From assembly GCA_011109175.1 (NCBI GenBank), contig RDEW01000003.1:1556774-1620773 (forward strand): a stretch of DNA of 64,000 nucleotides, given 5' to 3'. Shown here in pieces: positions 5,241 through 45,590 of the stretch. Source of the stretch: Dicyema japonicum. Its lineage: Eukaryota > Animalia > Dicyemida. Position numbers and translations under genes: made by a program. Positions within the stretch are counted from its first letter, which is position 1. The number at the start of each line of letters is the position of its first letter. Under the pieces are notes generated by a model. The model had not been told where the DNA came from. It worked only from the letters and a program-made list of their open reading frames with translations, and did not search any database.

Positions 5241-5294
5241 AGGTCAATATGATATTATTATAATTTAATAAAACTAGACAGACTGAAATATCCA

Positions 5295-6090: not shown

Positions 6091-7559
6091 TTCTACGATA
6101 GTTGCTTATAATAATAAAAACATTAAACTATGGCCAAAAAAATTAAGAAAATCGTGTAATTTGGAATTAATTTCGTTTGTTTGAAGAAAAATTGGATCGT
6201 GAAGTTTTCCACTTTTTCGTTTAAGAAAACTGTATTTACTGTACATTTTAAACACTTAGGATCTCAGCTGAGGCTCGTGTTTTCAGATTTATATAATTTT
6301 CTTATAAATTCCCACACACTTTCAGATATCACCAACCAAATGAAGCCTAACTAAATCCCAACTAAAATAATATCAATTCGCCTAGATTTCAGATTATCTG
6401 GAAGAACTCATTGATTACGCCAATTCTGAAGACAAGAAAACTGAGGGATAATTCATCTTTCTATCGCCATGTCTTAACAATTTACAACATATCGAAAGTG
6501 TTGAAATTCTTTCCTGATTGTAATCTCCTCTGTTCTGCAAAGCTTGCGTTCCTTTAGAATATTTTAAATCTTTTATTGTGATTATTTTGTCACGATTTGA
6601 CTCCCCCGTCTGGTTTATTCAATATAATTTTTTTTGCTCCCGACTTCGGACACATTATCTTCCGATAACAATTCCAAAAAAAGGATTTCCCATATCAATT
6701 TTGTGCAGTTTCAACCTTCCATATACGGTCAGTTTCATATACTGAGTTGGTTTAGGCATTAAATTCCGATGGTGACAAGAGTGAGATTTCAAGAAGTCCT
6801 TGTGACTTATAGATGCGTAATATTAGGTTGTTAGCTTGTACAGTATTTGGAGCAGAAAAAGATTAAGTTGTTCTCTCAGATGGACTATTGGAGCTTGCTT
6901 GCAGCAGGAATTAGCGAAGGAAGATGACGTTGCTGTTAGTTTTCCGAATTGATGAACATGGTAATAGCAAAAGTGAACTAAGTTGTTTCCTTTGTTCTCT
7001 GAGAAATTATGAATTATTTGTCCCGATTAGCTGTAGGTTCGATTTCGACACAGCTACCTGGTTGAAGATTCCGTTCTGCTCTCTATCTTTTTCAAAACCT
7101 TAGAAGCGTCGATTGATCCACCTGTCTCTGGAGATCCTCAATGTCTGGCTTCACTTCCAAAAGAGGATTTCACTTCCCTACACCACTGGAGGGGTTGCCA
7201 CGAAGGCGGATATGGATGAACGTGATGTTTGGATTAGATATACCTTAATTAGCTCTTAACCTCTTTCCTGCATATCCAGGGTTATTAAATAGATTGTGGC
7301 ACCAATTATTTTGTATCTATTCGAGATCTTATTGGTTGCCCTGGACCATCTGGACTCGACATCAAAGTGAAGAATCTTGGGGGTGACCTGATCTGGAGAC
7401 GTGGTTCCTAATAATCGTTACCTTTTGTGTGTTAGCGAAGCTAGGGATAATAATTTAATTAGTTTATCGGAACCCACGTGAGCGACGATGGTTTTGACAA
7501 GTCCATGAAAATGTCATGTGACAAATCAATTCATCTCTGTAATTTAATATTTTAGCCAA

Positions 7560-7800
7560 AAAATTAAAGTCAATGAGTTAGTGTTTAACCACCAGGAACA
7601 TACAATAAAACTCCTCAAGCTGACTTTGGAAAAGGATGACTTCATTAAGAAGATTTCAATGCCAATTAATTAAGTGATCCCAGCTTCTAATAATTCCCAC
7701 ATTCTCCTCGAGAAGACCGCCAGCGATTCCAACGTCTTTTTAAAATGTCATCTCGAATTTCCGCAAAGTAACTAGATCGGGGTGTTTTTCTTCAGGACCA
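7560..7800 (-). mobile_element. 3' fragment of 'GIT-stop' LINE
   Basis: Ends ...LEAGIT* (GCT GGG ATC ACT TAA at 7670-7684), then an AT-rich tail. Confidence 0.6.
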
Positions 7801-7863
7801 CATCAATAAACCCTTTCCCCAAATTAAAATTAATTCCAAAGACCACTGTTAAACCGAAAAAAA

Positions 7864-10000
7864 CTAAGTGATCCCGACGAAATGAATCATGGCTCTCATC
7901 TTTACTCGGTGTTTATCCCTTGAGCCTACACAAGTTCGCTGCGGCAAGCACTTCCTTGGCATTGGTGTCCTTTTTTGTTTTTTTCAATAAGTGTCTCCAA
8001 AAGCGTCGGTGATTTGATATTTTTCCCTGTATACCATCTTTCGGTTAGTTTGAAAGCCCTTTTCTGGGTTGCGGAGATTTTCTGGATGTTCGTATAAGAA
8101 GCCAGTGGTCCCCATGAAGTATACGCATTTGAAATGCATGGTTCGATGTACTGTGAGTAGAGCGTTTTAAGTATAGGGTGATGTACAATTTTCCATAGAC
8201 CTGTTAGGCATTTCAGAAGGTAGATTTTTTTCTCACATTTGTTAAGCACGTTAGTGACGTGTCTCGAAAAGTTCATGTGTGTATCGAAAGTCAGACCCAA
8301 TATTTTTTGCCATTTGCTGAACGGCAGTCCTCTTCCCTCCGCAGAAACTTCTATTGTCCTGTTCGACAATCTTTTGTCCGATGAATAGAGAGTGTAACAG
8401 TGTTGATTGACATCCGATTTTTGTTAAACCACTCGAGTAGTCGATCGAAGTGTTGTTGTATTATACCCGTCGCTGTTTGGATGTTCTGATCCCGTGAGGC
8501 CAAGACGATATCGTCTGCGTAAGCCAGAAGCAGGTCGTCTCCTCCATTCGGCGTTGGAATGTCAGCCGTAAATAAGTTGAATAGTAATGGTGATAGCGGC
8601 GAACCTGGGGTACTCCATTTCGGAATAAACGGGAGACAGATTAAATGTTTCCAATGCACACTCTTCCTCTATGTCCGTTAAGGAATTTAGTCAGCCAGCG
8701 TTTGAGGTTTTCAGGGATATCTGATTGGTAGATTTTCCATGTTAGATTTTTTCTCGGCACAGAGTCAAAAGCTTTGTGGATGTCCAGTGAACATAACACA
8801 GTTTTCTGGTGTCTTGGCTTGCACAGAAATCCAGAGCGAATAAAGTTAGACAGGGAGTTGTTGAAGCTTGTTGTGGACCATCCTTTTTGAAATCATGCTG
8901 GAACGGTTTATGGTGAGTCCTTTCAGTGATTTTTGCGAGGATGAGCTTTTCCAGAATTTTTGACATGGAGCACAAAAGAGAAATTGGCCTGAAGGAAACT
9001 GGGTCTACTTTCGGTTTTCCTGGCTTCAATACTGAGCGAATGTTTGCAAGTTTCCACATCGTTGGGATTGAGTTATAGTTAATAGACCAGTTGTAAATTT
9101 TGGTCAGAGTACCGATTCCATCATTGCCTAGGTTTTTCATGAGAATTCCTTCTGGACCATGTGAATGTGTTACTTTTATTTGGCTTAGGGATGCCATTAC
9201 CTCCTTTTCAGTGAAATAAGTTAATTGATCTTTTTTCGGTTTTCTTAGCGGCGGTTTGGGTGGGTCAGTCCTCATGGTTTTTGTGAGAGATTTTCGCGTA
9301 GTATTTTATTAGGTGTTTAGGTCCATTTGACTGAATTCGTCATTTCCGGATGTCCTCTCATCCACCTTCGAGATATTTCGAATAGTTTTCCAGACTTTAG
9401 ATGTTGACCGGTTACGATTTAATGACGTAAGGACCATCTTCCATATTGCTCTCTGTATTTTGAATTCATTGGCTTTTATTTTTTCGTTCAGCAATTTTAG
9501 ACGGATCCGTGCTTTGGAGGAACGGATCCTTGCTTTTTTGAGACAGTTTCATTCCTTGACCAGAGCCTTCCTTCAGTACTCAATCGTGTAAACGGCATAT
9601 CGTTTAGAGACAGCCATAGATCTTACTTCCAGAATGACCTTGTTAACGTAAGCAACCGCCATATAAAGAAAGGTAAAGTTTTCCAGCTGTATATTAGCCA
9701 AATGTTGATCCGTAACTGATCGGAATAATTGCCAATTTTCAAGATTGTATATGCAGGTTTCTTCTTTCCACTGGTAACTTCTCTTGATTTTTAGCAGAAT
9801 AGAGTTATGATCACTTCTGGTGTCGTAGATGACGGACCAATTAATTGTTGTTGAAAGCTGTGGTGAACAGAGTGTGATATCTGGGGAGGTTGGATAGTCA
9901 GAGTTCCTTTGAGGTGTTCTTGTGTTTTTTGATGGGTCTGATGATTGTCAGATTGCCAGAATGCGGCTCTCAGAAAACCTCGGTCATTGTTTCTAAAGGT
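7864..10000 (-). mobile_element. APE-RT LINE ('GIT-stop' family), frameshifted
   Basis: SHGPEG, FRPISLLCSMSKILEKLI, PGSPLSPLLFNLFTADIP, AYADD, KILGLTFD; terminus VGIT* at 7864-7878. Confidence 0.9.
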
Positions 10001-19569: not shown

Positions 19570-20940
19570 CTTAATGTTAGGGTACCTCATCTTGAATACA
19601 AGGACAATCTATGAATTGTGATACCAGGGAACGGACATACTTTCTTGGGACTTTCTTGGGTGCCCACTGACGAAAAGGAACTGCGGAGCCATCTACAAAC
19701 AAAAGAGGATGAACTCTCCAGAGTCACGGAGAAACTCTCCTTACTCGATGGTCATACAGCGTTCTTCCTTTTGAAGAATAGCATCGGCTTGCCCAAACTC
19801 CTATATGCTCTCCTATGTTCTCCCTGCTTCAAACATCGTGACATCTTCCTGTCACTGGATAGGACATTGAGAAAATCAGCTGAATTGCTTCTAAACATCC
19901 ACTTTGATGTGCCGAGTTGGAACCAATGCAAGCTTCTTACACGCCTCGGAGGAACGGGTCTCAGGTCGGCGCTGGAATTCGCCTATCCAGCATATGTGTC
20001 ATCGCTCTCAAGTGGAAGCCTTTTGGTCCAAGAAATCCTACGTATTACAACCGGACTTTCATGGAAAGAGTCTTCGATGAAGCTCGTCGCGAATAGTGTG
20101 AAACTGGTTTGGATATGCCGAACGATCCTTCGAGGCAACGTGACTGGGATGATATCTACTCCAAGAATATCTTCGAAGTGCTAAAGTCTGAGGCCAACCA
20201 GCATCGTCTTGCATGCCTCGTGTCAGCCGCCAACCATGGGAGCGGAGCGTGGCTTGATGCACTCCCGTCTTCCTCCCTGGGGACCCTATTGGACGATGAC
20301 TGTATTCGGATTGGAATCGCACAACGCCTGGGAGCTGATGTTTGCGTCGAACACCAATGTCGCTGTGGAGGGATCGTCGATGCCAAAGGGCTGCACCCGC
20401 TCTCGTGCAAAAGGAGTGCGGGCAGAGCACCCCGCCATGCTGCTATGAACAACATTGTCTTGCGAGCTCTTGAAGCGGCAGGCTTCCCGGCAGTACTGGA
20501 GCCTGTGGGATTGGACCGCGGAGATGGGAAAAGACCGGATGGGTTAACTATCTTTCCGTTCACTGAGGGAAAATCGCTCGTATGGGACTGCACTGTTGTG
20601 GATTCTTTCTCGAACTCGATGATACTCAGCTCGGCGCAGTCTGCTGGATCGGCAGCCGATCTGGCCGAGAAAATCAAGATTAAAAAATATGGCGAAATTG
20701 GAGACCGCTACCGTTTTGTACCGGTAGCAATCGAGACGTCTGGTGCGGCCGGAAGTATTACAGCCTCTTTCCTAAAGGAAATCGGGGGGAAATTGGCCCA
20801 CCGCAAGAAAGACGTGCGGGAAGCGGTCTGGCTGAGGCAAAGAATTGGTATCGCAGTTGTCCGCGGAAACGCTTACTCCGTGATGTCAGCAGCCGCTCTC
20901 CTCTCTATAGTTAATAAATAATTTTTTATTGTTAATAAAT
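19570..20940 (+). mobile_element. CRE-like REL non-LTR retrotransposon, 5'-truncated (RT C-term, CCHC finger, PD-(D/E)xK endonuclease)
   Basis: HQCRCGG..GLHPLSCKRSAGRAPRHAAMN, RPDGLTIFPF, LVWDCTVVD, FVPVAIETSG; 270-aa open frame, then A/T tail. Confidence 0.9.
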
Positions 20941-22969: not shown

Positions 22970-23285
22970 AATTGGCGCAGTGTAAAGAGTGCCTGCAAAA
23001 AGGCCCCTAGCTAGAATTCGGCTTCAGTACACTCCGGTTGAAGGTTCCACGTATCTACGATGCTTTGGCTTGAGGACTGACGCTGTCATAGTAAACATCT
23101 CACTGCGAATCTCCATAAAAAACATACACGCAACAAAAAATAAGTAAAGCATTTTTTGATTCCCTCTACGATTAGTTATAATGACTGTTCTTTACTTAAA
23201 CAAAGTGTGTACCCTACCACACTTTAAGCTAACATGGCTCTGCGTAAAAGTGCAGTTTTTATATATAAAATTAACTTATAAAACT
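22970..23285 (+). mobile_element. tRNA-derived SINE family B
   Basis: TGGCGCAGTG A box; core gaaggttccacgtatctacgatgctttgg..tgacgctgtcat shared with 26364, 48875 and 49560. Confidence 0.8.
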
Positions 23286-24603
23286 ATTTACTATATTATG
23301 AAATCAAATAGTCATTAATACTTTGTTTTTTAAATTATGATCTTTAGTGAAAATTTTGGATATTCGTGAAATAGCTACTTATTCAACCGAGGCAGAATTT
23401 GCAGTAAACTTCGAAGATTTCCACATACAGGAGAATTTTTAATATTGGAATTAAATTTTGAAACAATCAGACCTAGTTTAGGAAGATTCAGAAAGAAATA
23501 TTTTGTTGCGGTTAACCAACTACCTCATCCTGCGACAACAACGTAAAATGGTTTTATAATTTTAGATAAAATCTTTTCTTTCCAAACGGACTTGTTTGTT
23601 GTGATTAAGGATGAAGGCAAGCTATCGTTTCCGAATTTCTTTGATCAGATGTGACGTTGATCCGTAACCAAAAGCAATCAAACTACCCCGATAACCTGCA
23701 AAACCGCGTATTCAAAAAGACTGTACTCTAAAGACATTCCCCAGCTGCCTTCCAAATTTTTGATGCTGCTGTACTGTTTTTTACCGATTTCCTTATCGTC
23801 ACAGAAAATAGTACATCCCCCCATGGATTCATCGCATCATGGTCTTATTTCCCTCCTGAGATCAACTTCACACACAAACACAAGACTAAAAAAAACTTTG
23901 TTGCCACACTCAAAAACCCCAGATTTTTTGGAAAACTCTTAAAATGATTTATTCGTGACAAGCTTACTCTCATGTTTCCCGTAACACTGGAATATCTATA
24001 AAATTGTGAAATCTATCCTCGGTCATGCTAACTCACTCATAGGCTATAAGACCAGAATCAGTCATCATCATACTACAATGAGTTTCCGTTGTTGAGGACC
24101 TCGTCCTCAGAAATTGCAGAACTAATCAGTGTTTTTTGCCCACGTGTCAAAATTTATCACATAATTTCAGAATTCAAGTGCAAGAGAACCGAATAGTCTA
24201 GTCATTCACTGTATATAATCTGGGTCCGAATGGCATTCTCACATTAACAAATCTCATCGAACGATCTATTTACCATCTTATTTGAACCCCAACCGCGATC
24301 TTTCCGTTCTGATTTCCTCGTGTCAGTTGTTTCATGAAACAGGATATATATGGACTCATGAATGAACTCTTTAGATACGAAATTTATAAACTTTTAGAAA
24401 ATATCGCTCGGGTTATGAGTGATGGCGTCAAGAGAACTGTCCCAATAAAACTGGGTATTCTAATTCCTATACAAAAGTCCCACAAGCCAAATAAAAAAAA
24501 TTAAGACCAATTTGATAACTAACGAACAGAGGATAAATTGATATAAAATTTATATTTAAATATTAAAAATTATTTAAAATAATTAGATATTATTTTAAAC
24601 TAC

Positions 24604-26204
24604 ATGAGGAATGTCTTTTGCCTAGTGAATCATTCATCTTCTATGAATATTTTAGGAAATAATTTCAATTCAACGTATTTACGAAATGGATTACATACCA
24701 TCATTAATGGAGAGAAAATTAATATGAAAAACAAAGATATTAAAGGCTATTTGAAGAAAAAGAGTTCTATTTTCTACAAAATTCGAAAATTTTTCAGACT
24801 CCATGGTAGTTTGTTGTATAATTAGATTTTGTTGAAATTGAATTACCTGTATTACGCTCAAAATCTTCCATTAATGTACTTTAAAAATTATACCTAAGAG
24901 ACCAATGATCGTTAAAAATAATAAAAATTTCTATATTTTATCGGGTGATCGTCATTTGGTTGGTGATGGTAGTTTTATAATTAGTTTACCAATACTCTCA
25001 TCTCTAGTGGATTTGATAGATACTACCACGTTGTTCGTGATATAGTAAATGACCCAAGAACAATTAATAGTCACATAGAGAGAACGCGTGTTGAATTTGA
25101 AATGAGAACCAATTCATTGGATGATTTGATTGAAATGTCAAAAAAATTATTGGAAACAATTTGTCACCCAAGGAATGTTAACTTTATCGTTGGTTCATAT
25201 GACGAATTCCTAAATACACATTTCGATCCAGCACCTTGTTTTTTTGTCAATGATTTAAAGGTAGAGTTTAGATTAACGTAGATCTTCGACGTTACTAGTA
25301 TTTTGTTAATTAATAATTTCTTTTGTAACTTTGATGGTGAACGTGAGAACATTACAACATTTGCACTTAAAATTCCCGCCAAATATGTATTTTTTGGTTT
25401 GAATAAAAGAATCTGTCAACTGAAATAATAAAAGATATTCAAATAAAAATAAAATATAAATATTCATTTTTTGTATTTTTCATTATTTAATATAGGTCTT
25501 TTATTTTAATTGTAAAAATAATCAAAATGGGGAACTTAAGATGACTGATGAACAATATTTAAAATTCAAGAATGGTGCAGACGATGTACTAATCAATGTA
25601 ACGGAGATGGAAGATAATGATACATGTTTTCTTATTACAGGGAAATCTACATATTCGGTTGAGTTTATTCATAACATTTAGAAAATAATTTGTGGGTATC
25701 TTAGGAGATTGGTTGTTAATGAAATATACGAACAATATTTAAAGTGTGATAGTAAAGTTGCTAAAATTTATATTTTTAGATTTTAAATTTCACTATCACA
25801 TCATATGCCCTATTTTAAATATTCAGTATTTAAATATGTTATCTTAGAATTCAAATTATCCTGTGACAACTCATTACACCACAAAAATTGATGGAAAGAT
25901 TGATAAAAATGAAAATCATTTGATAGAAAATGTTACAGTTATTATAAATTTATAGATGAAGGGGAGTCATTTTATGATTTCTCTGAATGGATCACAAGTA
26001 GGTTGGGGGGCACTTCGAGAAACAGATAAATCAGTAATTGACTATTTATTAGGACTGTCAAAAGATAAAAATTTAAATGAAATAGAATATTATAACTGCC
26101 AACCTCATGGTGGATTTACTTTATTTGCTGATCAACTAGTGAATGCTCTTGCAACCAGAAAAACAAAATCCTCATTTCATCTCTTGATATTTGAATATAT
26201 TTGA
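24604..26204 (+). CDS. DARS2: Highly divergent mitochondrial aspartyl-tRNA synthetase homolog (motif 1, motif 2 region, GAD insert, motif 3 region), ~11 tiny introns, catalytic residues lost; 3' end uncertain (may extend to ~26354)
   Basis: Spliced LHDFVEIELPVL; NFYILSGDRHL|FTNTLISSGFDRYYHVVR; LKIFDVTSIL; FALKIPAKY; MEDNDTCFLITG..GYLR; HFMISLNGSQVGWGALR; YNCQPHGGFTLFADQL are colinear with human [108 protein letters not shown] (reference recalled). Confidence 0.8.
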
Positions 26205-26363: not shown

Positions 26364-26645
26364 GAATGCCGGACAAAAGTTCTGATGATTCTCTAGTTCT
26401 AATCTAGCTGCTGTGCTTTTCGGCTGAAGTTTCCGCGCATCTATGATGCTTTGGGTTGACGAGTGACGCCGTCATCAGTGAACATTTCAACGGAACTGGA
26501 TCGTCTATAAAGACCTCACACCTAACAAAAAAAAATAAGTGAAGAGCATTCCTTGGTTATTATCATAACTGTTTTTTAATAAAATGTGTGTCCCGCCTGG
26601 AAGGAACTATAGGTCTATGGATCTTTTTAAAGTGCAGTATTTTTT
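26364..26645 (+). mobile_element. SINE family B copy with 14-bp target-site duplication
   Basis: CATAAGGCGAAAAC at 26350-26363 and 26646-26659 flanks the family B core. Confidence 0.9.
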
Positions 26646-27699: not shown

Positions 27700-29460
27700 C
27701 GTTATATCCTCAACTCCAGATCACGTTTACGGATCTTATTTAGGGGAGGGGATATTTTGAAAACTTCCCAGCGCTCCATCTGCAGGAAAGAGGATAAATC
27801 CCTTTCCAATCAACCTTCATTCCACAATGACGCGTATGAGGTTTGCAGACGCAAACAAAAAATTCTATCCTTCGAGAATGGTAAGCTTTTGACCCCACAT
27901 CTATGTCCTCAATCACCTCGAACAGAGACGCAGTGATAATTGAAGTTACGATTTTTGATACAGTTGATCTTCATATACATTGAAATCGAGTCCATCACAC
28001 AGATCTCTCATAAATATATAGCAGAAGACTCAAGATTGAGCCTTGTGGCACTCCCCTCTTCATAACAATCTCTTCAGAAATAAATCCTTCACATATGACA
28101 AATGATCTTCTCCCTGTCAGAAGATTTCTTAAACAATCAAGTAAAAGTTTTGAGATTTCAGCTGCGACTACCTGACAAAACAGTGCATCATGCCAGACAT
28201 TATCGAATGCCTTCGATATACGACACTTAGCTGATATTTGAAGTTCCTGGCTTTTCAATCTCAGAGTTTAAGATGAAAAAAACAATCTTCACATGATCTC
28301 CCTGGACGAATGCCCCATTGTTCCTTGTTGAGAAAATTCCGTGATTCGATATGGCGTGTAATTATTTTATAAATCACCCTCTCCGTAAATTTTGAAATTG
28401 TTTATTAGACAATAGCCCAAGAAATCCATCCTCGATTTTCCTGGTTTTGGGATCATCCGAATAATGGAATCCTTCCAAGCTTGAGGTACATATCCCATAT
28501 TGAGACTTGCTCCAAATAGGTAACAGAAAACCTCGAAAAGGCAATCCGGACCCTCCTTGAATAATTTAAGGCGTATCCCGTCCATTCCAGGAGCTTTATC
28601 TCGGCACTCCATAATAGTTTGTTTAACCTCTTTAATAATTATCTCCATGCGCCATGTCCCAAAATGTTCTTTTAGAATTTTCATACTTGAAAGAGATCAA
28701 GCAAACTCAGAAAGAGATTCTTCGGGCACTAGATCCTTTGGATCAATCCTTGAATACTCTCGAGAAGCTCCCGAAAGCCATTAAAAACATCCGTCTCGGT
28801 GACAACAGTGCCATGGATCTCTTCAAATTATTAACATCTGATCCAGGAGTTACAAGCCTCCGATAAGACTACCAGAATGTTGGGTTATTGGGGTCCAACC
28901 TCCTGCTTCAGTGCATCCATTTCTTATTGACTTTTTTTTAAATAAAAATCTTTTGAGTAACTCGTATTCTTCTCTATAAATTCTTGGTCCAATAATCCAG
29001 ATACCGTCTTAACTTTGTCCGAAGCGATTTAGTTTAAATTTCAGTTTGATTGGTCAGGGACAGCAACTTAGGAGAAAACAGGTTTCGCAAACAATGTAAA
29101 TACTCTTCCATAGCACTCACAATGTTTGCGCTAACATAGTCCACTTCACCGGGCAACAACATAAAGTCGATAAAAAAGTAGTTTATCCGTCATGAAAGTC
29201 CTGTAATGACTCCATATGACATTATTAGTATCAAATTTCATAAAACCCAGAAATACATGGCCGACTTTAAATTAACACATAACTTTAAATTTTTGAAAAA
29301 TATCAGCCTCGTTTGGGTTCGATGAATCCATTGTGAACTGTGAATATCAGTAGAAATAGAGGGTAACGAGGACTCCACAAGGTAAAACCTAGAATTGAAG
29401 CTTGATGACGGACGAGAGAGTTTAACGACGCCTGGGGTATTCCGAGAACCAAAGGAAAGA
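27700..29460 (-). mobile_element. Decayed APE-RT LINE (Jockey/CR1-like)
   Basis: DKAPGMDGI, YVPQAWKDSIIRMIPKPGK, ISKAFDNVWHD, GVPQGSILS; APE remnants upstream. Confidence 0.8.
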
Positions 29461-30930: not shown

Positions 30931-31405
30931 AACTAGAATGGTAGCGATGCGTATCTAAGCAACAAAATTAACTAGGAGTACAACTGCCTAACCAGAATAT
31001 CTTAAGGCGACAATTTACTTTTAATATCTATTATGTATTGTTTTTCTTTCGCTCGATAAATAAAACAATAAACCGCATTCATCGAATTTCAACAATGACG
31101 ACACATCATTGAATTTTTAATCAATAAACTCTTATCGTTAAAACAATATAATTTCATGAATTTTCCGAACAATTCGAAACTACCTTTTTCATCCTTGTCC
31201 AGTGATAGTCCACAGGGGATACACTCCCAGCTCTCTGCTCTGAGGTCGAGGATTATCATGAGAGGCAACTCACATTGTGTGTTCAATGCCTGCAGGCCAT
31301 AATGGATACCTTGTCATAACAACTAAATCGACCGTTAATAAAATTGTTCTATTTATTATTTATTATTTAAGCCAAAGAAACACCGTCTTAACCAATAACT
31401 AATAT

Positions 31406-32460
31406 TCAGGTGATCCCGGCATCTCTCAATAATCGGGCCATTTTTTCTCGATGCTCCGACTGTGATCCCACGCATTTTCTATACGGACGGGGGTCTTTTT
31501 CCTTTTCTCTTCTGAAATTGCCTCCAGTTGCCTCTATGATAGACTCGAGTGTTCTGGGGGCAATTTCTTTATCTGTATATTTTTCTAGTAACTTTTTTGC
31601 TCTTGACTGGATATCTTGAATTTTTGTTAGGTTCGTTGCCGACAGGTTAGATCCCCATGCAGTACATGCATAGCCTATTGTTGGCTCGATATACTGCTTG
31701 TAGAGGGTCCCGATACCTGGCGGATAAATTTCCTCCACAGTTCCAAAGGAAGGCTTTTACAAAATTGATCTTCTTCACACAGGTTGATATGATGGATTCC
31801 ACATGGGCTGAGAAGCAAAGGAAAGTATCAAAAGTTACTCCAGTATCTTCTGCGATTTCTTTCGTGCTATAGGTACTCAATTTAACGTGACATCAATTGT
31901 TTGCGTTCCCATCTTTCTATTCTTAGTAAATAGAGTGATTGCTGACTTTTCGGAACATGCATTTAATCGATTCTTGCACAACCATTTATATATGTTATTT
32001 AGTATTCCTTGTAGTCTTTCTTTAGCATGTTCGACATTTTTGTCCCTAGATGCGACAACTATGTCATCGGCATAGGAAAGTAGCATGTCATTATTATTTA
32101 TAGGTACGGGAGATCACTCAAAAACAAATTAAAAAGGATTGGTGACAGAGGAGATCCTTGGGGTACACCATTGGGTAATAATCCCGATCTGGAACTCTTG
32201 TTTCCGACGGATACTTTCCCTCGGCGTCCACTTACGAAATTTGCTAACCATAACTTTAATGGTGCATCAATTTTTGTCAAAAATATTTTTCGTATGAGGA
32301 TCTTCCTTGGGACAGAGTCGAAAGCTTTTTGAATATCGATCGTACATATGACCGATTTTTCCTGTTTTGGCTTGTTCTTGTGTCCTTCAGTTATGAACTT
32401 CATTAATGTTGTTAGGAAGGAGGTTGTTGATAATCCTTCCTTGAAGCCATGTTGTAATTA
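31406..32460 (-). mobile_element. 'GIT-stop' LINE, 5'-truncated (RT and C-term)
   Basis: IDIQKAFDSV, GVPQGSPLSPILFNLFL, SYADD, LYKQYIEP, terminus RDAGIT*. Confidence 0.9.
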
Positions 32461-32639
32461 AAAAATTAAAATTAACCTGTTAAATAAAAATTTTTAAAAT
32501 GATATTTTAAAGTGAGAAAATATGAGATATTTTCGATGATTATTTAACTAAATAATCTATTTATTGCCTATTAATTATCTGAACATTGCTGCGTGGTGCC
32601 AACGTTAGTGTTGTGCTATGTGGCTACTTGTTGAAGAAT

Positions 32640-32915
32640 TTTGTTTGTTTCGTCTGTTCCTCCTTTCTTCTTTTCAACTAGAGTGGTGTCATGTGATCCA
32701 CTGTCTTAGGTGCCGCCCAGTGCCAGGTTGACATGAAAAGGGATCATTTGCTCTCCAACACATCACTGGAGGGTTTCCACAACTTCGAGGAATGGACGTC
32801 TTTTACCTTTGATGCTGGTTCTGGATGGACTTGACGTGAAGGATTTTGTTTCTTGGACAGTGGAAACTGGATACAGTTAATTAGTGGGAACTGAATACAC
32901 ACGGAAGTCACCAGG
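32640..32915. repeat. Structured repeat family C (probable RTE 5' UTR; pseudoknot-forming), copy 1
   Basis: Aligns with 44345-44605 and 54935-55225. Confidence 0.85.
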
Positions 32916-33329
32916 GCTATAGTAAAACTGAAAAATGGTCGTTCCCCCGGACTTCATCTAAAGAAATAGATAAGTTCTCAGTTATTTAAAATGGCTTCTG
33001 AAATTAGAAATGGTACCTAACGATGAATGTTTCCAAAATGAAAGTAGTGGATATCAGAAAAATAGAAAGAAGACCGGATGAGCCACGGAAGACCAATTAG
33101 CTTGGGTCCTTACTTAGAGACAGTGAAGTCGCCCTTGCTAAAGCTGCAATAAATAATGTTAGAAAGAACTGGATTGACAGAAAACGAAGTATATCATTAA
33201 TTCGTCAATGTGGGCGATGTCCATGGCTGAAACACTTGGAAATGACTCGTTTCATCAAAGGCAACTCAAAAAATTACATTATTATTATTATTAAAAAGCA
33301 CTACCGAGAAAACATAAATTAGTTAAGTT

Positions 33330-34260
33330 TCCCTTGTGCCTTATTCCTAATCATCCTCACCGTCAATCTCTACCATGATCCTCTGTTGCGAGCTAGTTCT
33401 CTTAGGTAGTCCAGGTCGTCCGCCGAAGTTAGTCTCATACCAACCGCCGATCGGTTTTCGTTCAAGATAGTCGGAAGTATTGTTCTTTGCTTTCCGCGGA
33501 ATCCGGTAGTTGTCCATTGCGATATTTGCGAGGACCTGGTCATTCAGACGTAACACGTGGCCAAAGAGGCTCCATCTTGATTTGAAAATATCATCTGACA
33601 GCACATCGAATTTGAATTTATTATAAAGGTTTGCATTAGAGATCTTCATAGATAGACCAGTTGATCTTGATTACCGATTTGAGCTGAGCTCTGTGAAAAG
33701 AGCCAAGACGAGTAATCATTGCGTGTATTTCGTTTTGTTGGGATTTACGGATAAGTACCATTTCGAAAATATGTGTGGGAGAACGCTGAGCATGTGCTGA
33801 AATGTTTGAGTATCCTCAGATACAAAATCCAGATCGTCTACAAAATTATTTCGTCAGTTTTTTTCCAATGAGGGCTTTGAACTCTCTAATTGCAGCTTAA
33901 AGGTAAACAACGAAGAGGACCGGGGATAGCGAGTCACCCTGTGGAACTCCACGTAAAGTTGGAAAAAAGTTGGAGGTGCATTTTCCAAATTTGACAGAAA
34001 AATTAACAAGTTCCATATAATGTTTGCTCCATTGATCCTTTGAGTCTCGAGATCGCTGATTTGAGATGGAGGCTCTTCAAATATATTGTGAATGGAAAGG
34101 GATATCTTCGCTACAATTGCGATGGAGGAGTACTTCTTGAAACTAGGCCATGTTTCTGTGGACACCCAAGAGTCACACTTCCTGAATACTTGCTCTAAAG
34201 TGGTGATGGAAAGCGCCCCGATGGAATCACTGTCTTCTACTTCTCTCGGGATGGGGCATG
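33330..34260 (-). mobile_element. RTE-like LINE remnant (RT to 3' end)
   Basis: FVDDLDFVSED, RWSLFGHVLRL; same family as 44640-45590. Confidence 0.75.
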
Positions 34261-34269
34261 CACAGATAC

Positions 34270-34500
34270 CTTTTCTAGTGAAGATTTTCAGACTCCACGT
34301 TGAAAGTTGGGGAGGCAGCACAAGTATTCGAGAACTCCAAAATAAGAAATACCACAGCCTCTTTTCCACGTACAGCTCGTTGTCGTCAAGACAAGTGAAG
34401 TCTTCGGGCTCAAGACGGTCTCTTTTCTAAGATCAAAAAAACTGAGTGGCTGTTTCAATAAATTTATCTGGCAGTTGTCAAGAGAAACAGGCACTCAATT
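34270..34500 (+). mobile_element. CRE-like 3' end fragment
   Basis: Shares caagacggtctcttttctaagatc with 59660; encodes the REL C-terminus. Confidence 0.65.
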
Positions 34501-34839
34501 CTTTATGCTCTATCATTTTGATTGTTTTGTAAAATTAAAATTTCTCATTTTCCCTTCAAAAATTTATTTTTAAATTGATTCAGCGAAGGTTCAGTCACTC
34601 GACCGATTTCAACGTTCAATCAAAAAAGTCACTGAAAAAGTTAAGACTGCTACTAAAAATATCCTGGCAAATTTTTCATAAACTCACAAATTTTCCAACA
34701 ACAGCTTTTTATTGAATCTTTTGTCTAATAAACTTTAAGAGCTAATTTTTATTACTATTTCACAGCTGTCACTTTAAAAATATTTGATTTTCTCATTTTA
34801 TCGACCGACTCTAGGATCAATGAGGTCACTAATGCTTAC

Positions 34840-37130
34840 TCAAACATAATTCTTTTTTCCATTAGTTGAACATTCAAGTTTGAGGACATTGGATATCGAT
34901 TTCCTTCTATCCAAAAGTGTAGAAAATTTATCTGGATACGAGGCAATCAAGATGGACCGTAAAAAGAGAAGAGGGGGTGGACTACTTACTCTATTCAAAA
35001 AGAATCTGAAATGCAGAGACATTACTTCGGAAGTGAGGGAACTTGTTGGAAATGACGAGGTTACTGAAGCAATTGGAATCTCGCTTGGGACAACGAAAGG
35101 AAGTATGTGCCTCGTGAATATCTACTTGCCTCCTCCCGGCTCCTGTTCAAGGACTATGTTATTCCAAACCTATCAAGATTGGCTATCTACGATGAGATAA
35201 TCATATGTGGAAATTTAAACGCAAAGCATCCATTATGGTTGTCAGGCCGACACGAGAGGGAAGCTATTGTTATTAAAATCGGACTCCCTAACGATACTGA
35301 ACGATCCAGCGAAAAATACAAGGAATCCACTCAGAGAGACGGATCAGCTTAACTCACCGGATGTAACACTCTGCTCATCGTCGCTTTCATCAAAAATTGA
35401 TTGGTCTACGAAACAAGAAGCGACCATGAAGTCATGAGAGAAGTCAGAATGAGGAGAACACCTGCTAGTTATAACTACAAAGCTGCTAATTGGGAATTGT
35501 ATTGCGCAATCTCTGATGATAGACTGAAGAATTGTTACTTGGACAGCTTCAAATCGCTAGAAAAAGCGATCAAATACTTTACTTGCACAATCCTAGAAGC
35601 AAAATCATTGGATATTCCCAAGCATCGTCTAAACTCCTCTAATGATCGAGGGAAGTCAGCATTGATCAAAGAAAGAAATCACCTTAAAAAATCTAATCGG
35701 ATCACATTAGAAACGAAACTCCGGATCAGAGCTCTAAACAACGAAATAAAGGCCAGAGAGTTCAAGGCCCAGAAATTGAAGTGGAATCGGATTCTTACAA
35801 AGGTAAATCGCAACCGTAGTACCGGAGAAGTGTGGAAAGCCATCCGAAATGTTGCAAAGGGAGAAGAAACTTCCCCGAGGATGACTATACTCAACGAGAC
35901 GTTAACAATTTGATAAAATTCTACACAAAAATTTCGTACAAAGAACACAGGAAGTCGAAAGTGCTTCTCTCTTCATGGAGAAAACTGAAGAAGAATTCTA
36001 ACCCAGTTTACTTCTCGGATGAAGACGTGAAGAATGCGCTGCGTTTTAAAAGAACAACGTACTCTGCCGGTCCCGACAACATTACAGTAGTGTTATTGAA
36101 GAACCTTGGAGATATGGAGTCGGTTTTCTAACGTCGGTGTATAACTATTCAATTAATTGTAATACCGTTGTTATGGAAGCAAGCCAACATCCAGACCTAT
36201 ACTGAAACCAGGAAAACTTAAGGAAGATCAGGCATCATTTAAACCTGTGTCATTATTATGGACGGAGGGGACGTGTTTGCCTCGGAGGACTGAAATCAGT
36301 CTCACGTCTTCTCCCAAACGGTGTCCCCAAGGATCTCCTTTATCCTCCGCTTTATTCAATTTATATCTGGCCGACCTCCCGACACCGGAATCCAATAACG
36401 ATGTTCTACTTTCATATGCGGACGACATTGTTTTGGCCTCGCGTGATCGGGGTATAAAAATGCTACAGAAAAATTACAAATTAACCTGGAACGAATCAAC
36501 GCCTGGGTAATGAAGAACCGACTCACGATAAATTCCAGAAAGTCGGTCACGTCTATGTTTACTTCGGACAAAAGGTTGGGGAAAATGACTGTCAAGTTAA
36601 AATTGGACAACATTGAAATCCCCTTCACCAAATGTCAGAAGATCCTGGGCGTGACACTGGATACGCATTTATATTTGTCACCACACGTGGCAAACATTGT
36701 TCTGAAGTGCGAGAAGAGGATCAATGTATTAAAATGTTCATCTGAAATATAGAGGCCGGTACCCACCCGGTCTTGATGAACATTTACAAGCAATACATTG
36801 AACCATGCTTCTCGTACGCGTGTGCTTCGTGGGGACCTTCATTATCATGGACTAACACTAATAAAATCGAGGACGTTCAAAAGAAGGTTTTCAGAATGAC
36901 GGAGCGGTGGACTTGTGGGAGACATAGAACCGGACCGACTACTCTGGAGGCCCTCATTAAACAAAACTCCGGCATGCGGGAAGGTGACCCTGCAAATTCA
37001 GTCAGCCCTGTACGAGCTTGTATGGGTACGAGGGAGGAGCACCGGGAAAGAAAGAGGATTTTGGCGGAGCGCATCGGGATCACGTGATAGTTAGTTTTGG
37101 TTTTACCGTGGTCTTGAATGTTAAATAAAT
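34840..37130 (+). mobile_element. Near-complete ORF2 (APE+RT) of 'GIT-stop' LINE with frameshifts/stops
   Basis: DRKKRRGGGL, NIYLPP, CGNLNAKHPLW, SAGPDNI, PQGSPLSSALFNLY, SYADD, KILGVTLD, terminus ERIGIT* at 37087. Confidence 0.92.
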
Positions 37131-37199
37131 AAAATGACACGAAAAACTTATTTTATTTTTAACCTGAAGACGTTTTGAAATACGTTATTCTAAATTATT

Positions 37200-37765
37200 A
37201 TAGGTAAATAAAAGAGTAAATAATCATATAGTGGCTGCACTGGCTGCGTGGCTATTTCCTCTCAGGATAGCGAGCGAGATTCGCTAAAATAACCAGCAGC
37301 GCTCACCAGGGTCTCCTGTTAGTGTATCGATCCGATTCCCTAGACGACTCAAGAATTCCACCGTCGCAGGTGCAAGGGAACCAGACGTCTCAGCGGCGAG
37401 TAAAGCAAACAAAAAATCCTTGGGTAGGACCGCGTACTTTTTCCATTTCAACTTCTCAGCCTTCTTAGCTGCAGAACAGGCACCAGAGGCACTCTGGAGT
37501 AGGTCGCAAGAGGTAAACGTGTCGGTGCAGGTGATTTCCCAGACAAGAGGTTTACCAGCTTCAAAAGGGAAGATTGTCATCCTACGTGGTCGTTTCTTTC
37601 CCCGCCTGCAAAGACCGACTGGTTCGAGCATGGAGGGGTGTTTTTCGGCGTCCAAAGCTCTCCTAACGACTTCGTTCAAGGCTATGTGTTTGGGAAATCT
37701 GCCTGCACTCTTCCTGCAGGAGAGAGGGTGTAATCCAAAACAGTCGATCTGTAGTAATCCATTAA
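37200..37765 (-). mobile_element. CRE-like element 3' segment (CCHC + REL)
   Basis: GLHPLSCRKSAGRFPKHIALNEVVRRAL, LEPVGL, IFPFEAGKPLVWEITCTD, AAETSG. Confidence 0.9.
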
Positions 37766-37769
37766 AATG

Positions 37770-39050
37770 AACCGGATCCTGTCTGGGGTTTTTCCCAAGT
37801 TATCCGCCATGTCCTGTTCTCCGCCAATTTGATAGCTTTCAATAAGAAGGACGGCGGAGTACGACTGGTTGCGGTCGGGTTTGTCTTCAGAAGACTGGCT
37901 GCTAAAATTGCCTCCAGACATTCTATTCCACTCGTCACAAAATTCTTGAATCCCCCTCAAGTAGGCGTCGGTATTCACTTGGGATGCGAGGCTGCTGTTC
38001 AATCAGTGAGGACATTCATAACCCGCGATATAGAAGATTCCCGGGAACATGTCCTGGTCAAACTAGACATCAAGAACGCCTTCAATAGTCTAAGGAGGGA
38101 CAATATCTTGGAGGCGTGTGTTGAGAGATGCTCTAATATTTTCGAATTTGTGAGTCAGTCATACAACCTACCTTCATCCATACTTTTCGGAGACGATCTA
38201 ATCCATTCCTATTCTAAAGTGCAACAGGGAGATCCCCTTGGACCCCTATTGTTTTGTCTTGCACTGGAGAAAATCACCAAACTTCCGCGCTCGCCTCTCA
38301 ACCTATGGTATCTGGATGATGCGGTCCTCGGAGGAGCCGCGAATACTTTTTTCCGGGATTTTGATTGATAATTCCAGCACTTTTGGAAGCTGGACTGGAA
38401 GTAAATTACACTAAATGCGAAATCTACAATTGTGGACTTTCAGAAGAGAAGTATTCAAAAGCTTTGTCATGTTTCGGAAATTTACTGACTGGAAGTATTT
38501 CCACACATGATGAAGACCTTGTATTCTTCGGATCCCCAATCACTATAAATGCAATGGGAAGAGCTATGTGTGAAAAACGACGCTACTCGGAGAGACTCTG
38601 AACCGCTTGTGTCTACTTGATATGCATACAGCATTATTCCTTTTGAAAAACAGTCTCAACGTACAGAGGCTTGCACATGTCCTGAGGACTGCTGTTTATT
38701 TCACCCTGTATGAGCAACTCGCACAGATTAACGAGATTTTTCGTACGACAGCGGAACGTATCTTCAACTTCCGGTTCGAGGATTACTCATGGAAGCAAGC
38801 CACGCTGCCAGTGAGACTTGGAGGACTTGGAATTTGGAACCCTGTGGACCTTTCTTTCCCTTCATACCTATTATCGCTAGTGGGCTGTAGCTCCCATGTC
38901 GAAAGGATTCTACACTCCATACCAGAATTCTCAATTGACCAAGACATAACCCACGCACGAGAAGCCAATGGTACGATGACACGTATATAGGAAAGAGATT
39001 TGGGCCCTAGAATCCCCGAAATTTCGTTGCGACGGGATTGAAAATAAACT
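37770..39050 (+). mobile_element. CRE-like RT segment, inverted relative to its 3' segment
   Basis: AFNKKDGGVRLVAVG, KLDIKNAFNS, VQQGDPLGPLLFCL, WYLDD, LPVRLGGLG. Confidence 0.9.
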
Positions 39051-41481: not shown

Positions 41482-42387
41482 TCACATAGAACATCCAACT
41501 AAGCAGCTATCGATCACAACTTGATCGGTAGAGTCAGATTTATCCAAAATTCCACGAAAAACATTCAAAGCACGTATACCGCCAATAGATGATAGTGCCT
41601 CCACTGCCTCATGACGTACCATAGGGGCCTCAGTTTCGCATTCAGAGCAGTCTTTAAGTGCATCAAATGAAAGATCATTTTGTAATTGACCAAGAACATA
41701 AGCTACTTCATGTCTGAACAAAGAAGAACCACATTTCAACCCAAGATTGAGAATTTTTACAGATTCATTTGAGTTAATATTTCTTAAAGAAAAAATAGCC
41801 CTGTATCTTCTATACAAGGTTTCATTATCGTCCAACAAAATATTTTTAAGTTCTTCAAGCGAAAGTGATTTGTCAAATGGATATGCGGGATCAATAGAAA
41901 GATAATTGGAATCAGAGGGTCCGTTTGACCCTCCATTCTCAATAAAATCCAATTTCTCCAAGCGAGAGTGCACGTTTCTGATAACTAAAATTATATTAAC
42001 ACAAACTTCAATAAAATTTGAAGCTGAATGCTTTTTTAAGGCAGATATAACCTCTGGTGAAGAAACACCAATAGCACCTAATGCTTCTCCTAAAGCAATA
42101 TTAATACAATGAAAACCACACTCATGTCTAGTTATGACATCTTGCTTTTCGTCATTTAGATTCTGGAGGAGAATAGGAATAGCTGCAGGATTCTGTGTCT
42201 GTCCCAAAACATAGGCACATTCGTGTTTAAGTAAAGTTGATTTATCACAAAATAGTTTTGATATTTCTTTTATTGTATCGTCCCCGGGAAAAGATAAAAG
42301 TTTTAAAAGAGAATTAAATCTTTCTGATATTGGACGATTTATATCATTTACAATTTTTGATAGAGAAAAGACAGAATCAACAACCAT
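41482..42387 (-). CDS. DOHH: Deoxyhypusine hydroxylase (two tiny introns hidden in the apparent ORF)
   Basis: Four HE iron-binding motifs: LLKHECAYVLGQ, TRHECG|EALGAIG, LFRHEVAYVLGQ, VRHEAVEAL; YLSIDPA linker; LYRRYRAIFSLRN. Confidence 0.95.
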   Translation of the reverse strand: MVVDSVFSLSKIVNDINRPISERFNSLLKLLSFPGDDTIKEISKLFCDKSTLLKHECAYVLGQTQNPAAIPILLQNLNDEKQDVITRHECGFHCINIALGEALGAIGVSSPEVISALKKHSASNFIEVCVNIILVIRNVHSRLEKLDFIENGGSNGPSDSNYLSIDPAYPFDKSLSLEELKNILLDDNETLYRRYRAIFSLRNINSNESVKILNLGLKCGSSLFRHEVAYVLGQLQNDLSFDALKDCSECETEAPMVRHEAVEALSSIGGIRALNVFRGILDKSDSTDQVVIDSCLVGCSM

Positions 42388-42478: not shown

Positions 42479-44150
42479 TCAACAACCTTCCTCGCCTGCC
42501 TGTTCGCCAGCCTCCTCAGGCAGGTTCGATTCTGGTTGCTGAAACAACTCCGAGAGCGCCTTGTCTAATTGAACCCTCTGCCCATATGGCATCTCAGGGC
42601 TCTGCCTCCTATACTCCAGTGTCAGGCTCTCTAGGGTCCGCTTTAACACAGTGGACTGTAGATAGGCCTGGAGCTTCCTATCTACCCCCAGCTGCTTCAG
42701 ATAACCCTTGTGGTACTTTGTTGCAATTCCTTCCCACGTCATTACTATAGGAATAACGAGGACCTTGCAACCAAGCATCTGCCCCATCTCGTTTGCAAGA
42801 AAGTCATACTTCCTTTTTTTCTCCACCTCCACAGTCTGCAAACGGTCTTGAGACGTGATGCCAACCTCTATGATAAGGACTTGGCCAGACTCCTTATCGT
42901 GTACCACAATGTCCGGTTTATTGTGCTTGACTAGCACCGAGGTACGGATAACACTGTCTACCTTAATTTGGACCCTGGTGTTCTCTACTACAGATTGCAC
43001 CTTATGAGTCCGCAACTTTCTGGTGTGGCGAATACCATACTTATTGCATAGTAGAAGATGAAGACTCCTTACTACCTCGTTGTGCCTCCACACATAGTCG
43101 TGGCAGAGCATGGATCCACATCGAGTGGCTAAATGATCAACCGACATGCTCCTTGACTTACAGTGGGGACATGTATTTGTTGATCGACCCCAAAAAATAT
43201 TGCGGTCTTGCATATACGTGTACAACGCCTCCGATCGAGGTGAGTTGTCACCGTATTTTAGCCATATTGTCGACGACTTAAGGTTGACATGTGGGTTGTC
43301 CAATGCTCTGAAGAGGACCTTATGAAGGCTTTTTAATTTGATCTTTTCCATCAAATTATTATATTGTAATTCGATCAACGCCTTCACAATTACTAGCCCA
43401 CCATCATCAACACTATAATTAGAAGACAAAAAAGGTCTGATAGTGCCTAGGTGGGTTGCCCGTGTTTTCTCGGTCGTTATTATGGCGTGCTTCCTAGCAG
43501 ACACACTTGACCCAGCTATCAGGGTGTCGTGCATTCGCATTAGGATACGCTCACTTAGTTGGACTACTCCACACAGTCCACGGCCGAATTTATCACGGGG
43601 TAAATCAGGCATTATAAGGGACTTTGGAGATTCGGTAACACCCAGATACTTATATCCTTCGTGTTCCTCTAGGACTCTTACTAACTCGCTACATACTTGG
43701 TGTTAGTCGCAGACTTTGAATAATTCAAATCTAGTCCTATACTCTCAAAGAATTCCCTGGCACAGACCCCCATGGAGTAGAGCTCCTCGGCTGTTCGAGC
43801 ATACATCTTCAAGTCGTCGATAAAAAGAAGGTAATTTGTACTTAAACAAACCCCCTCACAATAACTGGTATTTGCTCAAATCGGTCATTGAGGCGGGGAC
43901 TCAATGGCTCAAAACAAAGAACAAAGAGTAGCGGAGACATGCTATCCCCCTGAAGGATCCCCTCTTGAGTTTTACCTCGCCTATCCGGTGCCTATTATAG
44001 TTCAGATGAATACTCCACCTATTCATCACAGCCACTACAAAGCTGATGAACCACACAGGCATACACAGACTGTGTAGGCACTCGACAAGGTAAGAATGAT
44101 CAACTGAATCGTAAGCCTTCTTCACATCCACCCACATAGACAAAACAATC
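42479..44150 (-). mobile_element. R4/Dong-like REL non-LTR retrotransposon, 5'-truncated, intact 377-aa 3' frame
   Basis: WVDVKKAYDSVDH, LLFIDDLKM, YKYLG, RGL, CPHC..DHLATRC, RHNEV, NKPDIVV, IIEVGI, EKKRKY. Confidence 0.92.
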
Positions 44151-44344
44151 TGCGATTAAACTCAAACAGATTATTTTCTCTCTTTCTCTTACACCGACTT
44201 TCATTAAAAATTAATAAAAATATTAATATAATTTCTTATATTGGATTTTATTCTTTTGAACTGTGAAAGAAACTGAACAAAAATTTTATCGGGAAGTTTT
44301 CTGAAAAAATTTAATGGGAATTCAATTGGTTGTATTTTTCTGCT

Positions 44345-44605
44345 TGCTTGTCTGTTCCTCCTCTCTCTTCCTATTAGAGTGGCGTTATGTGATCCACCTG
44401 TCTAGGTGACGCCCAGTGCCAGGCCGGCACAAAAAAGGATCATTTGCTCTCCCCCCACTCCATCGGAGGGGTTTCCACAACTGCATGTAATGGACGTCTT
44501 ACCTTTTATGCTGATTCTGGATGGACTCTGTTTCTGTAGAAGTGGAAACTGGATGCACTTAATTAGTTGTTTACTTTAACTTTTTTCTCGGTGTTTCCTG
44601 GGTTA
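44345..44605. repeat. Structured repeat family C, copy 2 (best-paired)
   Basis: Five mutually compatible helices at 44381-44442; aligns with 32640 and 54935. Confidence 0.85.
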
Positions 44606-44639
44606 ATAAAAAATAAATAAATCGGGAATATTGAAGATT

Positions 44640-45590
44640 TCAACAAAACCAGAGGACCGCTTGAAAATTTGCGAAATTCATTACGCAAAGTCTTAGCAAA
44701 CATTGTGCTTGAACGAATAAAAGGACCTGCTTACAAATACCTACAAGATAGTCGAAGTGGTTTTCGAGAAAGGAGATCCACAGCTGATGCGGTCTGGAGT
44801 CACAGATGGAAGTGTGCAACATATCAAAGATACCATAACGCCACCAATATTCTAGGAATGACAAGTTAATGGAAGTACTGAGCGGATTTCTGGATGAGTC
44901 GAGTCTAAGAATGACCCGAATTCTACTTTTTAACACTGAGCTCCCTGTGAGAATCGGAAAGACCTATTCAAGAAAATTTGAAACAAACACGGGCACTCCA
45001 CAAGGAGACTCCCCTTCTCCTCTACTATTCACAATTTATTTGGAAGCCGCTATGAGGCAACTTAGACCGTTATACCAAGGAAAGACGGAAGAAGTGATCT
45101 ACGCGGACGATGTAGACCTAATTTCTGAAGACAAAGATGTCCTGGAACACCTATTAGAAAAAGCACCAGATGTACGAGGGAAATGGTTTCTTACTGTGAA
45201 CAGAGAAAACAGAACTCACAGAGATAAGAAGGATGAGTAACGTCCTAGAAGAGAAGTTGCGACAAGTAAAGAAACTCGGTTCACTTATAAGAGATAGCGA
45301 AGATATCTTACGTAGGAAAACTCTAGCCAATGCTGCGTTATATAAACTGAAGAATCTATAGCTCAATTAAAGAGGTATCAACACGAAAATAAGAATCCTA
45401 TTATACGACTCATTCATAAAACCCGTACTTTTATATAACGCTGGAACTTGGGGGACCTCATCAGCGGATATGGAAAGACTAGACTAGTTTCGCAGAAGTC
45501 AGCTGAGAAAAATAACAGGAACTACTTAACCTACGAGAATATCGAGAAATGCTTTATATCAAAGATGCAGCACTAGACCTATCAGCTAAA
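44640..45590 (+). mobile_element. RTE-like LINE RT remnant
   Basis: SGFRERRSTAD, GTPQGDSPSPLLFTIYLE, IYADDVD, KKLGSL, YNAGTWG. Confidence 0.88.

Follow-up and report, generated by a model that had tools for sequence, protein, structure and literature searches.

A candidate pseudo-synthetase of DARS2-like descent in the dicyemid Dicyema japonicum

Catalytically dead relatives of the aminoacyl-tRNA synthetases, such as SLIMP and HisZ, show that the oldest translation enzymes can be recycled. HisZ is the regulatory subunit of ATP phosphoribosyltransferase; it resembles histidyl-tRNA synthetase (HisRS), has no anticodon-binding domain, does not aminoacylate and is non-catalytic. Asparagine synthetase A (AsnA) and EpmA/PoxA are cores of the Asp/Asn/Lys group of synthetases that have no anticodon-binding domain. 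We know of none among SLIMP, HisZ, AsnA and EpmA that was derived from a bacterial-type aspartyl-tRNA synthetase (AspRS). SLIMP is the inactive subunit of the animal mitochondrial seryl-tRNA synthetase (SerRS) and keeps the tRNA-binding coiled coil that its catalytic partner needs (PMC10570016). Here we analysed a 64,000-nt stretch of D. japonicum DNA (the window; contig RDEW01000003.1, positions 1,556,774 to 1,620,773, forward strand), in which positions 24604 to 26194 hold a gene for a truncated AspRS-like protein. We favor the reading, with some confidence, that this is a nuclear gene descended from a DARS2-like AspRS, whose core scaffold and insert are still produced and kept by selection as a non-enzyme. 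It would thus plausibly add a member to the pseudo-synthetases; no report of an AspRS- or DARS2-derived pseudoenzyme was found in a full-text literature search.

No long open reading frame (ORF) was present at the locus before splicing. When ten GT...AG segments of 20-26 nt were removed, eleven stop-free pieces were joined into an uninterrupted spliced ORF of 454 codons in 11 exons, running from ATG at 24604 to TGA at 26192-26194 on the + strand of the window, once public DNA reads had been used to correct three indels. The successive introns were 20, 23, 26, 21, 23 (24 in the reads), 23, 24, 23, 22 and 24 nt long, and all ten began with GT(A/T) and ended with AG. Introns of this kind, with reduced splice signals, have been described for D. 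japonicum (PMC13644364), and those of the gene agree with that description. Four introns had a length that was a multiple of three (intron 5 being counted at its read length of 24 nt), and each of the four contained an in-frame stop. The GC content of the gene region (24604-26204) was 28.8%, compared with an average of about 37% over the retroelement-rich window. A preliminary description of the locus had proposed a gene spliced through about 11 tiny introns; the splicing held, and the count became ten introns in eleven exons. The parts of the gene were as follows (replacements are given in E. coli AspRS numbering).

24604..26194, + strand: whole gene, encoding a 454-aa truncated AspRS-like protein (from the splice model, the reads and colinearity with E. 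coli AspRS 127-540).
24604..24805, + strand: exon 1 (aa 1-67); residues 1-38 match nothing in the AspRS core and the remainder aligns to the helix preceding motif 1.
24826..24875, + strand: exon 2 (aa 68-84); motif 1, FVEIELPVL, at 24828-24854, with the invariant Pro as P75.
24899..24958, + strand: exon 3 (aa 85-104); FYILSGDRHL opposite E. coli FYALPQSPQL; Q195>H.
24985..25260, + strand: exon 4 (aa 105-196); GFDRYY at 25009-26, DIVND in the motif 2 position at 25039-53, R217>V at codon 25045-47.
Within 24985..25260, + strand: further replacements of exon 4, namely K198>T, E219>D, R222>T, F229>R, Q231>R and D233>E; no differences in the reads here.
25282-25386, 25410-25472, 25496-25657 and 25682-25756, + strand: exons 5-8 (aa 197-331); insert at the position of the GAD domain of bacterial-type AspRS.
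25780-25825 and 25848-25931, + strand: exons 9-10 (aa 332-375); THYT at 25869-80 in place of HHPF, H448 kept, H449>Y.
25956..26194, + strand: exon 11 (aa 376-454 and stop); D475>M at 25974-76, E482>Q at 25995-97, G485>W, R489 kept at 26016-18.
26133-35, + strand: R537>Q in motif 3 of exon 11, which reads F/YADQ; best PDB match human DARS2 4AH6.

The reads were contigs of four public DNA runs from one 2019 sample, which covered the locus contiguously and unspliced. As assembled in the window, the frame was broken twice, both times within an exon. The read contigs carried an additional CA or AA after 25796 (both versions keep Ile), an additional T or C at 26179/26180, and an intronic T in the T-run after 25389 (intron 5), besides a few single-nucleotide polymorphisms. 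The bases missing from the window at the two exonic sites were present in all read contigs, and both sites were polymorphic (CA/AA and T/C). In one run (X3) the allele depths at 25796, 267 and 180, were close in sum to the depth of 442 of the contig ending there, and the deletion of the window was not seen. Because the two read alleles account for the full depth, the two exonic frameshifts look like consensus errors of the hybrid long-read assembly at heterozygous sites. The "one or two homopolymer slips" of the preliminary description were therefore right in number but not in kind, as the two exonic breaks sit at polymorphic sites that are not homopolymers. Given the missing bases at 25389, 25796 and 26179-26180, other genes of the assembly may look broken in the same false way.

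Homology to the bacterial/mitochondrial type of AspRS was significant on both sides of the insert. Exon 4 alone scored 26.1 bits against Pfam tRNA-synt_2 (gathering cutoff 25), and its GFDRYY was identical to the AspRS signature. The best PDB match of the last exon was human mitochondrial AspRS (4AH6, E 0.008), aligned through NG.E.GGG.R and PHGG..LG.DR. The spliced protein was colinear with E. coli AspRS 127-540 (blastp 65.5 bits, 22% identity); phmmer gave 40.8 bits for the aligned domain and 41.4 bits for the whole sequence. Smith-Waterman scores against E. coli references taken from the annotated K-12 genome (aspS, lysS and asnS) were respectively 152 for AspRS (over its full length; z 24.8; 22-25 over runs), 119 for lysyl-tRNA synthetase (LysRS; motif 1-2 region only) and 50 for asparaginyl-tRNA synthetase (AsnRS), and AspRS was the best class IIb match of the protein. 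For scale, E. coli AspRS scored 450 bits against human DARS2, 116 against E. coli LysRS and 41 against this protein. The spacing from motif 2 to motif 3 was 308 aa, compared with 318 in AspRS, 216 in LysRS and 204 in AsnRS. The insert encoded by exons 5-8 had no Pfam or PDB match, and its similarity to the E. coli insert was not significant (z ~2). An insert of bacterial-AspRS size is thus predicted, and it is position and length alone that point to a GAD domain. Homology to DARS2, as claimed in the preliminary description, was confirmed by colinearity over the positions of motifs 1, 2 and 3, by the AspRS-specific scores and by exon 4 passing the tRNA-synt_2 cutoff. Its GAD insert stood in position and length but not in sequence: the profile search that it had proposed was positive for tRNA-synt_2 in exon 4 and gave no GAD match in Pfam for the insert exons.

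Active-site residues were compared at E. coli numbers, their identities being checked in the fetched E. coli sequence and their roles being those established in the literature on AspRS and class II synthetases. Replacement was found at 14 of the 17 positions (E171>S, Q195>H, K198>T, R217>V, E219>D, R222>T, F229>R, Q231>R, D233>E, H449>Y, D475>M, E482>Q, G485>W and R537>Q), and only H448, R489 and D536 were kept. R217 of motif 2 and R537 of motif 3, the invariant arginines of class II synthetases, correspond to V125 and Q435 of the protein; D475 and E482, the acidic residues that bind Mg and ATP, correspond to M382 and Q389. Independent PDB alignments also put V125 and Q435 opposite the two motif arginines. 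In AspRS, R489 and H448 contact the amino-acid substrate, and G485 belongs to the Gly-rich stretch lining the ATP site. In the reads, motif 3 differed from the window only by a synonymous change and an F>Y replacement (YADQ), and exon 4 did not differ. Since the reads agree in exon 4 and at the motif 3 glutamine, no Arg codon is hidden by a sequencing error; the preliminary description had named such codons in motifs 2 and 3 as what would overturn it, and they were not seen. The substitutions that it had listed were exact at their coordinates (DIVND at 25039-25053, FADQ at 26124-26135, which is YADQ in the reads, SGDRHLFT, THYT and SQVG). Elements that were kept include motif 1 with its proline, GFDRYY, NG..G.G..R and PHGG. 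Because the arginines of motifs 2 and 3 and both metal-binding acidic residues are replaced, the protein is predicted to be unable to bind ATP/Mg or to form aspartyl-adenylate.

The spliced sequence had no stop in its reading frame, compared with 40 and 64 in the other two frames; about 39 were expected from composition, and the probability of finding none was ~2e-18. Base composition differed among codon positions (chi2 53.5, p 9e-10), with an excess of G in the first position and of T in the third. This bias was also seen in the bona fide gene for deoxyhypusine hydroxylase (DOHH) of the window (41485-42387, - strand), a single-exon, 301-codon ORF that served as a normally evolving control, and it was not detected in the 1.5 kb upstream of the AspRS-like gene (p 0.78). 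In a threading test, a dynamic-programming search returned the longest stop-free path via any GT...AG introns of 18-30 nt. The read-corrected gene gave a span of 1595 nt; by comparison, 200 first-order Markov shuffles gave a mean of 97 nt and a maximum of 461 nt, and real DNA (the antisense strand and both flanks) gave 304-422 nt. Variants were less dense in the gene (5 in 1600 nt) than in the upstream flank (7 in 500 nt; Fisher p 0.011), a difference that we grade as weak support. The read-corrected gene showed none of the marks of a pseudogene, be it stops, frameshifts, lost coding composition or lost introns. The stop-free frame, the codon bias and the threading controls argue for a maintained coding gene over free decay.

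The N-terminal part of the protein was short. Approximately 38 residues precede the AspRS-aligned region, and motif 1 occupies residues 69-77; the alignment to E. coli AspRS begins at its residue 127, or at ~101 at the weakest. The anticodon-binding OB fold was not found in the intact ORF, as the preliminary description had suggested, and no upstream OB exon was recovered by Pfam, PDB or splice path: stop-free pieces upstream had no Pfam or PDB match, and no stop-free spliced path led into exon 1 from upstream with introns of up to 60 nt. Entry into exon 1 was obtained only via contrived introns of at least 100 nt, which were rejected. Because the OB fold is absent from the protein, it is predicted to be unable to read an anticodon. 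The first 36 residues contained no Asp or Glu (P ~0.01), as had been noted earlier, and only 2 Lys or Arg (2/36), so that the label "presequence-like" given to them was weak.

Upstream DNA contained one further feature.

24219..24501, + strand: possible degenerate relic of the OB fold, in two pieces (24219-24362 and 24313-24501) with weak resemblance to E. coli AspRS.

The two pieces resemble residues 2-34 and 80-114 of E. coli AspRS, weakly, in the correct order and on the same strand. Their top score and the sum of the top two were matched by 2-3% of random window pieces of equal size (p ~0.02-0.03). They lie in different frames in the more polymorphic flank, have no start codon, contain a frameshift, end in stops and are joined to exon 1 by no micro-intron path. 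If the resemblance is real, they may be a decayed relic of OB-fold exons, a weakly held assignment. At 24523 of the window, 80 nt 5' of the start codon, a 28-nt insertion/deletion polymorphism that in part duplicates its flanking sequence was seen in contigs from two of the four runs.

A long period of drift is indicated by the replacement of 14 of 17 active-site residues and the loss of about 90% of the similarity score. Neutral drift of such extent in DNA of 29% GC should have left stops, indels and an erased periodicity, and these were not seen. Because the frame, the ten splice sites and the coding composition survived this very heavy divergence, we infer selection for a non-catalytic role. 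An unbroken frame with a coding signature is therefore better explained by the retained, non-aminoacylating protein of the preliminary description than by a pseudogene in free decay. The analogy with SLIMP that accompanied this proposal is only partial. Several observations weigh against a selected non-enzyme. As assembled, the window carries two frameshifts, and the first 36 residues are not a clear presequence. The coding polymorphisms were 3 synonymous to 2 non-synonymous, which was not significant (P 0.10). Run searches with the gene and with the control DOHH returned the same four DNA runs only, and were thus uninformative on expression. Word-indexed searches with exon 4 and the last exon, whose length filter excludes full-length proteins, gave no orthologue or paralogue. 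An exhaustive HMMER search with exon 4 against 1.84 billion representatives returned only two spurious repeat proteins (CUB-like repeats and a surface-repeat protein).

These points would suit a relic in slow decay, i.e., a unitary pseudogene, perhaps still transcribed, that is functionless and has by luck escaped a stop or frameshift in its catalytic part. We regard such a relic as unlikely but worth serious attention. The possible broken OB fold just upstream would mean that part of the gene has already decayed, the polymorphism ratio is not significantly biased, the orthologue searches were empty and the run searches returned DNA only. However, the loss of 14 near-invariant residues out of 17 and a score of 41 bits against AspRS imply drift long enough for tens of stops under neutrality, and none was found in 454 codons that also retained ten intact pairs of splice sites and a strong periodicity. 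A rather improbable alternative is that the protein works as SLIMP does, as the dead half of a heterodimer whose other half is a canonical, active DARS2 paralogue encoded elsewhere in the genome, modulating it or adding surface to it. The protein retains motif 1, the interface at which class II synthetases dimerize, including its proline, and there is precedent in the animal mitochondrial SerRS2-alpha/SLIMP pair (PMC10570016); but the dead subunit in that pair supplies the tRNA-binding domain, which is missing here, so that the same division of labor would be impossible. It is very doubtful that the protein is catalytic even now, be it as an AspRS whose active site is unorthodox or as the bearer of a new ATP-dependent chemistry such as that of AsnA. 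Retention of the R489 and H448 equivalents and of fold elements would agree with it, but the protein has neither of the two arginines that all class II synthetases and AsnA-type relatives share (V125 and Q435 stand in their place), both Mg-binding acidic residues are replaced too (M382 and Q389), and Trp occupies the G485 position in the ATP-site stretch. It is scarcely credible that the gene is an artefact, whether of GT...AG pairs that occur by chance and let an ORF be threaded through them or of a chimeric assembly. The model was made from sequence alone, needed three read-based corrections and includes insert exons without detectable homology; set against this, the threading controls fell far below the observed span, four independent sets of read-derived contigs reproduced the locus contiguously, and significant homology, colinear with AspRS, lies on both sides of the insert.

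For the favored reading of a selected non-enzyme, a dimer-forming scaffold or adaptor would be the likeliest mode of action, because what is kept includes the interface formed by motif 1, core strands and some of the amino-acid pocket (R489 and H448). The protein is probably mitochondrial, by descent, and may act as a homodimer or pair with a different class II subunit, as HisZ or SLIMP does. Its partner, location and role are inferred.

Dicyemids are parasites of octopus renal sacs and are spiralian bilaterians, not cnidarians. The preliminary description had guessed a myxozoan and had argued from cnidarian mitochondrial DNA, in which typically only trnM and trnW are encoded, that the cognate tRNA(Asp) was probably gone. 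The genome is that of a dicyemid, D. japonicum, as supported by the DOHH match, shared retroelements, GC content, repeats and heterozygosity. Introns shorter than 30 nt have been reported only from myxobolid myxozoans and D. japonicum (PMC13644364). A myxozoan origin (Henneguya salminicola), considered for the sub-30-nt introns, was ruled out by DOHH, retroelements, GC, repeats, heterozygosity and assembly pieces (>93). The published D. japonicum assembly, made from O. sinensis material as a Platanus-plus-Falcon hybrid build, has 36.7% GC, 49% repeats and 1.24% heterozygosity (PMC6736024), and the GC content, repeat load, heterozygosity and assembly errors of the window were consistent with it. 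Because the organism is a dicyemid and not a cnidarian, the trnM/trnW argument fails; it is not applicable to dicyemid minicircles, which encode tRNAs. Mitochondrial genes of dicyemids lie on minicircles, whose tRNA genes include trnH, I, K, L1, N, P, Q, R, S2 and Y (PMC6543705). Together with trnV, also reported from dicyemid mitochondria (bioRxiv 10.1101/282285), the total is at least 11 kinds of tRNA. In this incomplete inventory trnD is not among the reported tRNAs (PMC6543705; bioRxiv 10.1101/282285).

A more specific history is conceivable, and we hold it to be unlikely. In this history the gene would represent the sole DARS2 orthologue that this bilaterian has, and it would have become a truncated pseudo-synthetase because tRNA(Asp) is no longer encoded by dicyemid mitochondria; cytosolic tRNA(Asp) would be imported, charged or rechargeable by a dual-targeted cytosolic AspRS, and the scaffold would have been retained to serve mitochondria in a new way. 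Cnidarians and sponges are known to have lost mitochondrial tRNAs together with the matching synthetases. If this history is true, such a coupled loss would have occurred inside Bilateria, with the synthetase recycled and not deleted.

The DOHH of the window was best matched by a protein labelled Octopus sinensis (80% identity), and all other matches were at 36-45%. In the Octopus sinensis assembly GCA_006345805.1, the 77.5-kb contig VCDQ01007938.1 (stretch 9985-30918), which encodes that protein, held an uninterrupted DOHH with 68% nucleotide identity to that of the window and 66-78% amino-acid identity over aligned blocks, and it shared the retroelement families of the window. This contig looks like contamination from another dicyemid species and is a possible source of comparative dicyemid sequence; no AspRS-like gene was found in its 21-kb stretch around DOHH, downstream of which the contig has no called genes. 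A short interspersed repeat flanked the AspRS-like gene on both sides (26375-26560 and 23035-23149) and recurred at 48870-49048 and 49617-49730. Its summed contig word depth was ~650,000, compared with ~365 for single-copy sequence in the deepest run, placing it among the most abundant elements of the genome; no tRNA was found in it by ARAGORN. Fragments of LINE-type reverse transcriptases and of related ORFs, with a GC content above that of host genes, were seen at 4200-9300, 19600-20900, 27700-28700, 31400-38400, 42479-45240 and 57100-57741. The many LINE-type fragments are consistent with the ~49% repeats reported for D. japonicum.

If the gene is a decaying relic, it would be a commonplace outcome of a parasite's genome reduction. 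If it is expressed and conserved in dicyemids, it would be a second, independent mitochondrial pseudo-synthetase of animals, and a more radical one, as it has lost its tRNA-recognition domain along with its active site; it would also raise the question of how dicyemid minicircle mitochondria obtain Asp-tRNA(Asp).

Compared with human DARS2 (4AH6) and E. coli AspS, the dicyemid protein shares the class IIb core signature, the motif 1 Pro, GFDRYY, NG..G.G..R, PHGG and the length of the insert. However, it has no OB fold, and R217, R537, D475, E482, Q195, K198, E219, R222, Q231, D233 and H449 are replaced. Like SLIMP, it is encoded in the nucleus of an animal, derives from a class II synthetase of mitochondria, and has kept the scaffold but not the active site. 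Here the analogy drawn in the preliminary description holds for an ablated site in a maintained scaffold and breaks down at the tRNA-binding domain, as the OB fold is absent from the ORF: SLIMP arose from SerRS and has such a domain, whereas the dicyemid protein arose from AspRS and has no tRNA-recognition domain. AsnA and EpmA/PoxA likewise have no anticodon-binding domain, but they keep the ATP-binding arginines, stay enzymes and lack the AspRS insert; the dicyemid protein is without the arginines and has an insert. HisZ, like the dicyemid protein, is a truncated and inactive paralogue of a class II synthetase; it differs in being bacterial, in its descent from HisRS (class IIa) and in having a defined partner, HisG. 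By these comparisons, SLIMP would be the nearest functional analogue, and HisZ, being both truncated and inactive, the closer one in architecture.

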